A stretch of DNA of 64,000 nucleotides from Corallochytrium limacisporum Hawaii (lineage: Eukaryota > Protista > Pluriformea): NCBI GenBank assembly GCA_002811645.1, contig PDIP01000083.1, positions 196,366 through 260,365 on the forward strand. Reading direction: 5' to 3'. This document shows positions 37,754 to 41,474 of this stretch, piece after piece (within the stretch, counting starts at the first letter, position 1; each line of letters starts with the position of its first letter). The position numbers were made by a program, and so were the translations under genes. Below the pieces are notes generated by a model. It saw only the letters and a list, made by a program, of their open reading frames with translations. It ran no database searches and had not been told where the DNA came from.

Positions 37754-38338
37754 TCATGTTACCATCTGAGTGTGAGTCACACGGGCTACTTTCCTCTTTT
37801 CTTCTTTACCGTTGATGGTATCCATCATGGTCTGCCAGCTTTTGGCAACCATGGCATTGCCCTCGCCAGAGTAAGCCACTACTACTCCCAACGTTTCACC
37901 GGCAGTGCTCAAGTAGAATCTACGGGCATCTCCAAGACTGATTACTTGTGCTCTTACAATGTCCTGAGCTCGGAAGCTATCATGCATTGCTACAGCATCA
38001 ATGTCGACAGCGCTGACATTTTCTTTCCGGATAACACCCTCATAGGGAGAGGCTAGGAAGCCGGACTCGGATGTCATGATCTGGACCCGTGCGTGACGTT
38101 TGTCCACTTCTACAACCTTACATAAAACGATATCGTTGACCGCGGGAATGTTACCACTCGGTTTAATTTTTGCAACCTCTACTATTTTCTGTCCATCACC
38201 GTGAGTATGGTACGACACATAGCCTAAGAGACTGGCATACACGTGGCCACCATGTTCGTAAGTTCCCACTCCCGTCGTTGCTCCGCTTGATTCACAAACC
38301 CGGTACCCCGGGAACACAAAAGCACCACCTTCGGCCAT
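37754..38338 (-). CDS. EXOSC1: Exosome component Csl4/EXOSC1
   Basis: GVGTYE...VYASLLG, PAVNDIVLCKV S1 domain, SFRAQDIVRAQVISLGD, YLSTA...LGVV, EEKRKVA. Confidence 0.95.
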   Translation of the reverse strand: MAEGGAFVFPGYRVCESSGATTGVGTYEHGGHVYASLLGYVSYHTHGDGQKIVEVAKIKPSGNIPAVNDIVLCKVVEVDKRHARVQIMTSESGFLASPYEGVIRKENVSAVDIDAVAMHDSFRAQDIVRAQVISLGDARRFYLSTAGETLGVVVAYSGEGNAMVAKSWQTMMDTINGKEEKRKVARVTHTQMVT

Positions 38339-38767
38339 GGTGTTTACTGTCGTGGACGTATCAGTTTACTGACCCATTGCAAGAGACCACATGTTGTCGC
38401 TATTCAGTACGGGTGAGCCCGTGGCGTGAAATACCAACCGCCCCAGGCAGAGAATGCTCCGCTGTTGCCCAGGCGGGAAGGGGGAAGGAGTTCACAATGC
38501 GAAGACTCGGAGAGGAAAGTGGACTGAGTACGAGAAAGGGAGACAGCGGCGGTGGCGGTGGGAGAGACAAGAGGCACCCTTGGGCCAGAAGGACTCCTCT
38601 AATGACGAAAGCAGAGAAGGGGTAGGATGTAATGTTAATTTGAAACGGAGCAACTCCGCGCTCCGGTTCGAGGGTATTTCACCCACGGGGAACCTGCAGT
38701 ACTTCATTCACATGAATCTTGTCTGGCTAAGAGCGTTCACAGTCCTGTTGGTCTGATATATGCAACG

Positions 38768-40300
38768 ATGGATGACGAAATGTCCTACAGGACGTTATCG
38801 TGGTTTGGTGATGCTGGTTCGGTGCAGGTCGCTGGATCATGGGACCATTGGTCAGGCAAGCTTGACATGACAATTTGTGGAAGCCTTTTTCACGAGTGTT
38901 CGATACCGGGTATGCAGAAATGGATTGCAAGTGTGCGGATCCCATCCGGACCTGACAGGGCAGAGTTCAAGTTCATCGTGGATGGTGTATGGACTATCGC
39001 AACTCATTATGCAGTAACAGCGGACCGCAATGGTAATGCTAACAATTACATAAGCTTGCCTGCTTCCCTGAATGATGAATCTGCCCTGAATCAAGCGACA
39101 TCGGCTTTGAAATCTTCTTCAGGGAATCGCCTGCATGCTCTTCCAGATCTTGACGTTAGGGGACTGAGGACTGTCAGCTTCAACGTTCGATACGACAATC
39201 ACAGTGACGGTGAAAACAGTTGGTCCTATCGCAAACAACACGTCGCACGTACGATTCAGATGCTTCAGGGCCACGTCGTGGGCATGCAAGAAGTACTGTA
39301 CCACATGGCTGATCAGTTGCACCACACAGACGGATTACTGCCTGGCTGGGCATGGGTTGGCCAAGGCCGAGATGGTGGCAAAAGTGGAGAAATGTCACCA
39401 ATTTTCTTCGATGCTGGCTGTCTGTCCGTGGTAGCCACGGGGTCCTTCTGGTTGTCTGAGACGCCGGAGCAAGTGGGCTCTAAGGGATGGGGAGCAGATC
39501 TGCCTCGTCTTTGTACATGGGCACAGCTGCGAATGGTTGAGAGGGGCAAAGCATCATCAGTTGGTTCCAACGATGAAGAACCTATCAAGGACAGCAACTT
39601 GATAGAAACAGCTGTTCAAAATGACGCAGACCACAACTTGCGCACAGTGTCGACGCAGACGGAAGGCATCAGTGATACTGGTCCCACGGATGTGTTGGTG
39701 CTGAACTGCCATTTGGATCACAAGAGTGAGCAGGCAAAGGTGGAGGGACTACGACTGATCCGCCAGCGAGCACGGACACTTGCGTCCATGGCACCCTCTG
39801 TTGTTGGTATTGTGCTCACTGGTGACTTCAACAGTGATCCATATTCGACGCAGTACCATGAAATGCACGACCGCGTACCCACGCCCGTCTCTGCCGGTCC
39901 AAAAGCACAGCTGTCAACCGTCCCCGTTCAAAACTGCAAGGATGTGAAGGAGAAGCAGTCCGACGCGAATACAGCCAATGGAAATGATATCAGCATGGTG
40001 GATGCGTCTGTCCAGGTGCTGGGTACTTGTGTGGATGATGGACTCGTCTTCACAGATACTTCCAGGTTGGCACTTCAACAGCACAACAAGGAAGCAGGAA
40101 CCATAACTGGCTTTACTCACATTGGAGAAGACTACAAGATGACATCAACCATAGACTACATTTTCACAGCACCCCAGGACAAGAGCATTGTGCAGTTGGT
40201 GGGCACGTTAGCCGAGAATGTCAAAGGAAAGAGGGCCTCTGATCACCGGGCTATCTTTGCAGACATTTACTTCCTATCCAACAGATATGGTTGTCGCTAG
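38768..40300 (+). CDS. Fusion of AMPK-beta-type glycogen-binding CBM48 and endonuclease/exonuclease/phosphatase (EEP) domain
   Basis: N-terminal VQVAGSWDHW...EFKFIVDGVW...DRNGNANNYI; C-terminal SFNVRYDN, GMQEV, GQGRDGG...GEMSPIF, GSFWLSETP, NCHLDH, GDFNS, IDYIF, ASDH. Confidence 0.92.
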   Translation: MDDEMSYRTLSWFGDAGSVQVAGSWDHWSGKLDMTICGSLFHECSIPGMQKWIASVRIPSGPDRAEFKFIVDGVWTIATHYAVTADRNGNANNYISLPASLNDESALNQATSALKSSSGNRLHALPDLDVRGLRTVSFNVRYDNHSDGENSWSYRKQHVARTIQMLQGHVVGMQEVLYHMADQLHHTDGLLPGWAWVGQGRDGGKSGEMSPIFFDAGCLSVVATGSFWLSETPEQVGSKGWGADLPRLCTWAQLRMVERGKASSVGSNDEEPIKDSNLIETAVQNDADHNLRTVSTQTEGISDTGPTDVLVLNCHLDHKSEQAKVEGLRLIRQRARTLASMAPSVVGIVLTGDFNSDPYSTQYHEMHDRVPTPVSAGPKAQLSTVPVQNCKDVKEKQSDANTANGNDISMVDASVQVLGTCVDDGLVFTDTSRLALQQHNKEAGTITGFTHIGEDYKMTSTIDYIFTAPQDKSIVQLVGTLAENVKGKRASDHRAIFADIYFLSNRYGCR

Positions 40301-40839
40301 AGTCTTAGTTGTATGTACTACGATGCAATATAGAAGTAAATCACGTTGCAACCACACCCCAGCTTTGCTGTGTTGGTGGGTTAGCTTGACCATCTCCTGA
40401 AATGCCCTTCCGCCCATCGTTTTCACGTTCGCCACCCTTCCGGTGATCCTGGCTTTGGCGCGGTAGGGTCCCTAAAGAAACTTCACCGTAGAAATTTTTG
40501 GCCCTATCCTTCCTACTGACGAATCCCGCCCGGGCTTTCCCTGTACCGCCGCGAACCGCTGCTCCGCGGCCCAGTGGCGTCCTCCGAAACAAACATGCAA
40601 ACTTCGAGTGAACTATAGAGGTATAAGACCTTCTGCAACGTTCATGCTTGACATGGTGATACACCTTATGCCTGGATCGCTCGCGACTGTGCTCTGACAT
40701 CGTTCGCGAACAGGACGACAAAAATATAGAGTCCTGCACCAGCTAGGTGGACCACGTAGCAAAAGCATCTTGGCGAAGCATAAGGAAAGGAACATTCGTG
40801 GATGTTGACGTCTTTCAGTGGAGGTCATTAACCTGCTCA

Positions 40840-41133
40840 ATGGTTTCACCGAAAGAGGATACATTCGACGGGGCTGTGGAACAAGATGTCGATGAGTTTA
40901 TCGAAAGCCTAGGCCTGGGCGCGAAAGAGGAGTATGGTTTGGATGACGTAGAAGCACTTTTAATCGCGGTCATCGGAAAGAAATTGCCAAAGGTAGGTGT
41001 ATATGTGAAAAGAATCATTGAAAGAAAATAAGGAATGAAACCAGCAACTAACTGGCAGAGTCTTACATCTCAACTTTATACGGAAATAGCAATGGATTGT
41101 GCAAAGGCTGGGTTTGGCTCGGATCCCAGATAG
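40840..41133 (+). CDS. Possible small spliced gene (exons 40840-40992 and 41059-41133), unknown, degenerate EF-hand-like
   Basis: AAG|GTAGGT donor at 40993, CTAAC branch at 41048, CAG acceptor at 41058 give an in-frame join (MVSPKEDTF...GKKLPK|SLTSQLYTEIAMDC...). 3' structure uncertain. Confidence 0.35.
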
Positions 41134-41474
41134 TTTCCACGATCCAGTTTGTGAACCAAAATTTTATCCGAACATGGTCAGAAGTTATATCATGGAACTC
41201 CATCAAGATCGTCTGCAATTCTTGCATGAACGAATTACATCTCAAATAAGGTCCCAAACCCTTTCGAGGACGGAGATGCATGAATACCACAGGACGACAG
41301 CAGGAGGTAGTCAGGAAGCCTTTGAACTCTCTTTGGATACATTAATCAAGGATTGATAAATATTTCATTGTCACATTGAAATATGTATTCAATTCTAGGT
41401 AAAGAGTATTTCTACATTGAATTGTATAATAGGACATATCGAAGCGAAATACACAATATTCCTGGGAATCACAT

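Follow-up and report, generated by a model that had tools for sequence, protein, structure and literature searches.

A 64,000-nucleotide stretch of the genome of Corallochytrium limacisporum Hawaii (assembly GCA_002811645.1, contig PDIP01000083.1, positions 196,366 to 260,365; hereafter, the window) carries a gene that joins a carbohydrate-binding module of family CBM48 to a phosphoesterase domain of the EEP superfamily. The CBM48-EEP open reading frame (ORF) occupies positions 38768..40300 (+) of the window, stop codon included, and encodes 510 amino acids (aa). Its ATG at 38768 is the first in-frame methionine codon and has stop codons upstream. From the N-terminus, the protein consists of an AMPK-beta/SEX4-type CBM48 (aa 9-98; 38792..39061, +), a linker (aa 99-131; 39062..39160, +) and an EEP phosphoesterase domain of the BT3783-type subfamily (aa 132-505; 39161..40282, +). 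The EEP domain holds two inserts, the first at aa 262-306 (39551..39685, +) and the second at aa 365-440 (39860..40087, +). An initial annotation of the locus had described one intronless ORF with no evident signal peptide, with the sugar-binding residues of AMPK-beta in its first ~100 aa and all catalytic motifs in its EEP domain. It had proposed that the product is a candidate glycogen-targeted phosphatase built on a fold other than that of the dual-specificity phosphatases (DSPs), in an architecture for which no characterised protein could be named. The description holds in each of these respects, and the proposal is supported as a hypothesis.

The transcript data come from two small RNA runs from 2015, X1 and X2. 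Each run yields one contig that runs colinear to the genome from one end of the ORF to the other and has no joints. The X1 contig (38732-40361) is free of differences from the assembly, and the X2 contig (38720-40391) has five. Together, the contigs define a transcript extending over 38720..40391 (+), with a 5ʹ untranslated region (UTR) of at least 48 nt, the ORF, and a 3ʹ UTR of at least 91 nt. Uncovered gaps on both sides split the CBM48-EEP contigs from the contigs of both neighbouring genes, in X1 and X2 alike. The sequenced material was spliced RNA, since the contig of a small neighbouring gene (window positions 40743-41368) skips 97 nt with GT..AG ends, joining 40990 to 41088. We looked for two separate transcripts and found one colinear contig per run, with none split between the domains. 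Hence, the reading of the ORF as a single unspliced unit stands. The absence of joints in colinear contigs also means that both EEP inserts are coding sequence; the idea that they are unspliced introns is ruled out, as is the idea that two genes have been read as one ORF.

An artefact of this kind, or bacterial contamination of the assembly, is an extremely unlikely explanation for the CBM48-EEP gene. The nearest named relatives of the EEP domain are bacterial, which is what contamination would have in its favour. Against it, the neighbouring gene is spliced, each run covers both domains with a single contig, and the flanking genes are ordinary eukaryotic ones: those for the exosome subunit CSL4, an RBR ligase and a VWA (Ssl1-like) protein, and a JmjC/RIOX1-like gene. 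Furthermore, P0125 and P0127, the metagenomic proteins whose EEP domains are most closely related to it, look eukaryotic, and the published Corallochytrium culture was axenic (PMC5560861), if it is the source of the same assembly.

Over 3.8 kb, X2 and the assembly disagree at six positions, all between window positions 38000 and 39620; one of these is in the CSL4 gene and the other five are in the gene for the CBM48-EEP protein. X1 is identical to the assembly. X2 thus stems from another strain or allele of the same organism. Four of the five differences in the CBM48-EEP gene are synonymous and at third positions; the fifth, N285D, falls in the first, disordered insert. This pattern is what purifying selection would give, albeit in small numbers.

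The N-terminal module is assigned by Pfam to AMPK1_CBM (PF16561; aa 9-98, E-value 1.5e-13, 51.2 bits against a cutoff of 26.8). In HMMER, aa 11-97 match the glycogen-binding domain of rat AMPK-beta1 in structure 1z0n (E-value 1.7e-4 for the domain alone). In this alignment, with AMPK-beta1 residue numbers taken as the 1z0n chain index plus 67, W100, K126, W133, G147 and N150 of AMPK-beta1 correspond to W28, K68, W75, G89 and N92 of the Corallochytrium protein. In AMPK-beta1, glycogen binding is abolished by the W100G and K126Q substitutions and reduced by W133L and G147R (PMC6274970). The motifs quoted in the initial annotation are found at aa 23-28 (GSWDHW), 67-75 (FKFIVDGVW) and 89-93 (GNANN). 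When the module is aligned with the three other CBM48s of the same genome and five AMPK-beta-like proteins, G23, W28, K68, D72, G89, N92 and N93 are invariant. A Foldseek search with a low-confidence model of the module alone returned only CBM48s of SEX4, AMPK-beta or SNF1 among its top 50 PDB matches, with SEX4 first. On inspection of the sequence, an acidic N-terminus leads straight into the module, which begins at aa 9, and no signal peptide is evident. The linker that follows the module is Ser/Asn-rich and modelled by AlphaFold2 (AF2) with one short helix (aa 104-116), at a predicted local distance difference test (pLDDT) score of 53-64.

The EEP domain is recognised by the Pfam profile Exo_endo_phos (PF03372; E-value 6.4e-9, 36.3 bits against a cutoff of 24.5) and scores 221.5 + 31.7 bits with a subfamily hidden Markov model built for this analysis; NCBIfam profiles gave no match in the 510-aa protein. 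Every quoted motif is present: SFN at aa 137-139, QE at 174-175, NCHLDH at 313-318, GDFN at 352-355, IDYIF at 462-466 and SDH at 491-493. In an alignment of 97 EEP sequences, in which we counted as conserved each column with at least 90% identity, the Corallochytrium protein holds every conserved residue. These include the catalytic set N139, E175, N313, H315, D317, D353, N355, D463, S491, D492 and H493. They also include positions outside the six classic EEP motifs, all of which are kept: R141, W152, R155, G198, R201, G204, G207, E208, W228, L229, S230, P233 and R247. The AF2 model has a core with pLDDT ~95 and the four-layer alpha/beta sandwich of the EEP fold, with target template-modelling (TM) scores of 0.84-0.92 to solved EEP structures. 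The first insert is disordered (pLDDT <50 at aa 266-299) and has no counterpart in the bacterial relatives; the second is largely disordered (pLDDT <50 at aa 376-422). Both are kept in the mRNA.

A dead scaffold, in which the EEP domain has lost its activity, is very unlikely. The domain has a long branch and large disordered inserts, and non-catalytic relatives are known among the glucan phosphatases (PMC13666283). Nonetheless, all catalytic and metal-binding residues are intact, the core is modelled with high confidence, and the sole residue that varies between the strains belongs to a disordered insert.

To which EEP enzymes is the domain most closely related? By sequence, its sole EEP matches in the PDB are 3g6s (E-value 4.6e-29), 3mpr (3.5e-26), 4c1r, a “mannosyl-6-phosphatase” (4.9e-26), and 3l1w (6.4e-15). 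The same four structures lead the Foldseek search with the EEP model, at E-values from about 1e-27 to 1e-22. The next group, which comprises CNOT6L, nocturnin, TDP2, PDE12 and ANGEL2, begins only at ~5e-13. Because these four are the only EEP matches by sequence and lead by about ten orders of magnitude in fold E-value, the domain belongs to the BT3783-type subfamily of sugar-phosphate phosphatases, and not to the nuclease, lipid or inositol EEPs. It is nearer to BT3783, BVU_0621 and 3l1w than to other classes of EEP; apart from BT3783, its nearest solved relatives are uncharacterised proteins. It is the genome's single EEP domain of this type.

This placement bears on the possibility that the EEP domain acts on a phosphoester other than that of a carbohydrate, be it in a nucleic acid, a lipid or, as with nocturnin, a dinucleotide, with the CBM48-like module serving a regulatory or protein-interacting role. 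The EEP superfamily is very diverse, the Corallochytrium protein has a long branch (1.3-1.5 substitutions per site) and two large inserts, and its Pfam EEP score, at 36 bits, is modest. However, the BT3783 group is its nearest match by sequence and by fold, with the nucleic-acid EEPs far behind, and the conserved non-catalytic residues of that group are kept. So too are the carbohydrate-binding residues of the module, and a parallel fusion of the same EEP subfamily to another starch-binding module, CBM20, exists. We consider a non-carbohydrate substrate improbable.

The genome context is one of glycogen metabolism. In the 24,109,830 bases of the assembly, a glycogen phosphorylase gene is present, as is a glycogen synthase of family GT3, the genome's sole GT3 match (E-value 1.9e-303; G000:C268:269305-271173, +). 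The core genes for glycogen synthesis and breakdown are thus in place. The GT3 gene lies on the same contig as the CBM48-EEP gene, ~32.6 kb downstream and ~9 kb past the end of the window. Any one pair of genes in 24 Mb would be this close by chance in ~0.3% of cases and the genome has several glycogen genes, so we regard the proximity as mildly suggestive.

There are four AMPK-type CBMs in the genome: those of AMPK-beta, of the CBM48-EEP protein and of two further enzymes. The first of these enzymes is a 713-aa protein (L015:1591-3732, -, on G000:C110) in which AMPK1_CBM (aa 102-188, E-value 2e-22) precedes 6-phosphofructo-2-kinase and fructose-2,6-bisphosphatase; judged by its domains, this CBM48-PFK2/FBPase-2 seems to be a regulator of glycolysis that is held on glycogen. 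The second (L004:1447-3120, -, on G000:C183) is a starch-synthase-type enzyme of family GT5 (Glyco_transf_5, E-value 5e-24) with a C-terminal AMPK1_CBM (E-value 1e-12), which occurs in this genome alongside the animal/fungal GT3 glycogen synthase. The presence of CBM48 on these two enzymes as well suggests an unusually elaborate glycogen-particle proteome.

The initial annotation had asked whether the genome encodes laforin. We found no CBM20 in the genome, and none of its 19 DSP matches lies at a CBM48 locus. Thus, no DSP with an attached CBM, and hence no enzyme of the laforin or SEX4 type, was found. A DSP near the GT5-CBM48 gene was considered as a rival glucan phosphatase and rejected: it combines a rhodanese domain with DSPc and is a DUSP10-like MAP-kinase phosphatase.

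The genome's sole PPDK_N match is a giant dikinase of 1740 aa (L007:3409-8631, -, on G000:C172), with an ATP-grasp PPDK_N domain at aa 573-1034, a phospho-His domain of the PEP-utilizers type at aa 1648-1716, and ~570 N-terminal and ~600 central residues that have no assigned domain. Its best PDB matches, 5fbs and 5hv1 (“PEP synthase”), have the same domain order; we take both to be rifampin phosphotransferase. The domain order of glucan, water dikinase (GWD) is the reverse of this type. We rejected the protein as a GWD partner for the CBM48-EEP protein because its ATP-grasp domain precedes the C-terminal phospho-His domain, and it is not counted as support.

The characterised relatives of the EEP domain point to phosphorylated sugars. 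BT3783 (4C1R; apo form 3MPR) is the mannosyl-6-phosphatase of a yeast-mannan utilisation locus of Bacteroides thetaiotaomicron and belongs to the same subfamily as the Corallochytrium domain (sequence E-value 4.9e-26; fold E-value 5e-25, target TM 0.89). It is a divalent-cation (Mg)-dependent phosphatase that was assayed on phosphorylated sugars and acts on phosphorylated high-mannose N-glycan (PMC4978465). BT3783 is a bacterial protein of ~290 aa that was produced in its mature form, starting at residue 27, has no CBM and acts on phosphorylated mannan or N-glycan. In contrast, the Corallochytrium protein is eukaryotic and predicted to be cytosolic, and it has an N-terminal CBM48 and two disordered inserts. 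A second relative is represented by 3l1w, an EEP structure from Enterococcus faecalis V583 (sequence E-value 6.4e-15; fold E-value 8e-22), which is probably MapP. MapP is reported to be an intracellular EEP-family maltose-6ʹ-phosphate phosphatase of E. faecalis (PMC3737437). The 6ʹ-phosphate that it removes is carried by a disaccharide of alpha-1,4-linked glucose and is chemically the same as a C6-phosphate on a chain of alpha-glucan. MapP differs in being a single-domain bacterial enzyme whose substrate is a soluble product of the phosphotransferase system.

The layout of the Corallochytrium protein resembles that of the glucan phosphatases. Laforin (CBM20-DSP), SEX4 (DSP-CBM48) and LSF2 all share with it the pairing, within a single protein of the cytosol or plastid, of a starch- or glycogen-binding module with a phosphatase domain. 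The pairing of a CBM with a phosphatase-type domain on one polypeptide is found here as CBM48 plus EEP, encoded by one transcript. The likeness is closest to SEX4, whose CBM is of the same family and is the top fold match of the Corallochytrium module. The catalytic domains differ: known glucan phosphatases (laforin, SEX4 and LSF2) are all built on the cysteine-based DSP fold (PMC13666283), with a CX5R motif, whereas the Corallochytrium domain is a metal-dependent EEP. A Pfam scan gave no DSPc match in the 510-aa protein. It thus falls outside the DSP family of glucan phosphatases, and is better described as a possible functional analogue of those enzymes.

What, then, is the CBM48-EEP protein likely to do? 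The reading that we favour, and that we place somewhat on the probable side of even, is that it is a cytosolic phosphomonoesterase, Mg-dependent and tethered to glycogen, whose substrate is phosphorylated alpha-glucan in the form of the polymer or of chains that derive from it. Its glycogen binding, phosphatase activity and substrate are all predictions from conserved residues and characterised relatives. With the binding residues conserved, the N-terminal CBM48 would dock the protein on glycogen particles. The EEP domain, on its flexible ~30-aa linker, would then cleave the phosphate monoesters borne by the glucose units of glycogen, or of alpha-glucan chains that come from it. A Mg2+-dependent mechanism is suggested by the intact catalytic set and by the closest characterised relative, and by analogy with BT3783 and MapP the most likely target would be the C6-phosphate. 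The protein would thus do the job of laforin, SEX4 and LSF2 with an unrelated fold, in an organism whose genome yielded no enzyme of the laforin or SEX4 type. The hypothesis of the initial annotation draws on the kept CBM residues, the single transcript and the glycogen genes, and is strengthened by the BT3783-type placement and by the parallel CBM20 fusion.

The main rival also places a phosphatase on glycogen. It holds that the substrate is not the polymer but small soluble sugar phosphates (glucose-6-phosphate, glucose-1-phosphate, or short phospho-oligosaccharides that glycogen breakdown sets free, such as maltose-6ʹ-phosphate), with the CBM concentrating the enzyme at the source of its substrate. 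Both characterised relatives lend this something: MapP is reported to act on a soluble disaccharide phosphate (PMC3737437), and free phosphorylated sugars were also assayed with BT3783 (PMC4978465). Moreover, the same genome has CBM48 on PFK2/FBPase-2, an enzyme of soluble metabolites, so in this organism carrying a CBM48 need not mean acting on a polymer. However, BT3783 also acts on glycan-attached phosphate (PMC4978465), and a CBM with a flexible linker is the layout of the polymer-acting enzymes SEX4 and laforin. In addition, uncontrolled hydrolysis of cytosolic glucose-6-phosphate and glucose-1-phosphate would waste energy. We regard a soluble substrate as rather unlikely, though more plausible than the other alternatives.

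Several observations weigh against a glycogen-tethered glucan phosphatase. An alpha-glucan polymer is the substrate of neither of the two characterised EEP relatives: BT3783 acts on a mannose phosphate, and MapP on a disaccharide. No canonical GWD was found in the genome, whose sole PPDK_N match has another domain order, and a CBM-less DSP of the LSF2 type may sit among the 19 DSP matches. L146 of AMPK-beta1, which like N150 we take to be a glycogen-binding position, is replaced by N88 in the alignment with 1z0n, and the Corallochytrium module has an ~11-aa insertion after W28 relative to AMPK-beta1. Structure models of the module are of low confidence (pLDDT 33-51 in the full-length model and 59 alone), having been built from shallow alignments. 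Lastly, P0125 and P0127 have no CBM, and their N-termini are complete, with in-frame stops upstream.

How widespread is this architecture? In a word search with the full-length sequence, no further protein turned up that combines CBM48 and EEP. Its best non-self matches were bacterial EEPs, mostly of Bacteroidota where named, at 31-37% identity, some of them fused to BACON or GH125. A word search with the CBM region only returned AMPK-beta-like proteins and nothing else. An exhaustive phmmer search against 1.84 billion representatives returned 6404 matches, the best non-self one at 1.4e-47. Among the top 150, ~27 were at least 400 aa long, and CBM48 was found in none of the 20 of these that were scanned with Pfam; P0166, P0172, P0177, P0222, P0226, P0264 and P0269 are the long matches outside the scan. 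Among the proteins of the word search and the scanned phmmer matches, there is no second CBM48+EEP protein. Of the papers searched, none connects EEP enzymes with glucan phosphatases or with starch binding. CBM48-EEP is a new combination of known parts.

Other glucan-binding modules do occur with EEP domains. In one of the phmmer matches, P0189 (413 aa), a CBM_20 (40.8 bits, with the cutoff at 23.3) stands N-terminal to a BT3783-type EEP domain. A search with P0189 led to two more full-length CBM20-EEP members, P0282 (477 aa, 49% identity to P0189, CBM_20 at 32.6 bits) and P0287 (376 aa, 38% identity, CBM_20 at 49.2 bits). In P0189 and P0287, the N-terminus leads directly into CBM20 and no signal peptide is present; the N-terminus of P0282 is longer by ~65 aa. 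The P0282 contig is 23.5 kb long, intron-poor and eukaryotic, with genes for Mpp10, a class-C G-protein-coupled receptor, AIF-1 and a thioredoxin+PUL protein. A thioredoxin+PUL gene also adjoins that of P0189. It is the immediate downstream neighbour of both CBM20-EEP genes, at L009:10001-11434 and L008:1216-2457 on metagenome contigs. Like the Corallochytrium protein, all three CBM20-EEP proteins have a starch-binding module N-terminal to an EEP domain of the same subfamily with SDH intact; unlike it, they carry CBM20 rather than CBM48 and have no two large inserts. They form a small uncharacterised eukaryotic family, found on intron-poor eukaryotic contigs of metagenomes. The ESM Atlas also lists a bacterial cluster of 62 proteins with EEP and CBM_21, assigned by language-model features only; a shape search of the Atlas gave nothing further on CBM fusions. 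With eukaryotic CBM20+EEP and bacterial EEP+CBM21 proteins, the idea of a glucan module on an EEP domain is not unique to the Corallochytrium gene.

EEP domains of this subfamily are found in various other contexts. Many relatives have two or three BT3783-type EEP domains in tandem (among P0121-P0123, P0162, P0165, P0205, P0240 and P0252), and the ostracod Notodromas monacha is annotated with a 737-aa protein that has three tandem EEP copies. Other relatives are fused to GH125, BACON, Metallophos, esterase or SnoaL-like domains.

In trees of the EEP domain, the Corallochytrium protein groups with P0125 and P0127 (approximate likelihood ratio test, SH-aLRT, 93 to 98). The CBM20-EEP proteins form a clade of their own elsewhere in the tree (97-99), whose backbone is not resolved. 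An approximately unbiased (AU) test did not reject a clade joining the Corallochytrium protein with the CBM20-EEP proteins (p 0.80). Hence, the trees neither show nor exclude a common eukaryotic EEP ancestor for the two. Since CBM20 and CBM48 are different families, at least two separate acquisitions of a module are implied by the sequences. The independence of the two fusions rests on the different module families and on the lack of a CBM in the nearest kin of the Corallochytrium protein, and not on the trees.

Together, these fusions raise a broader proposal, which we advance tentatively, as possible but short of probable: a third class of glucan phosphatase, outside the DSPs. Eukaryotes without laforin and SEX4 may have placed an alpha-glucan module on a bacterial-type EEP sugar-6-phosphate phosphatase at least twice, using CBM48 in Corallochytrium and CBM20 in an intron-poor eukaryotic lineage known only from metagenomes. 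The existence of the CBM20-EEP family means that the association of module and EEP domain is not peculiar to one gene. If such a class exists, regulated glycogen phosphorylation would take place in unicellular holozoans, with an analogue of laforin, the enzyme of human Lafora disease, that uses a wholly different, metal-dependent mechanism.

Laforin is absent from most protists and invertebrates (PMC2714694). A glycogen-tethered EEP phosphatase, if our reading is correct, would be a convergent, metal-dependent solution to the removal of phosphate from glycogen. It would also extend the sugar-phosphate EEPs from bacteria into the storage-glucan metabolism of eukaryotes. Finally, the CBM48-EEP protein would provide a simple, testable model in a close unicellular relative of animals.

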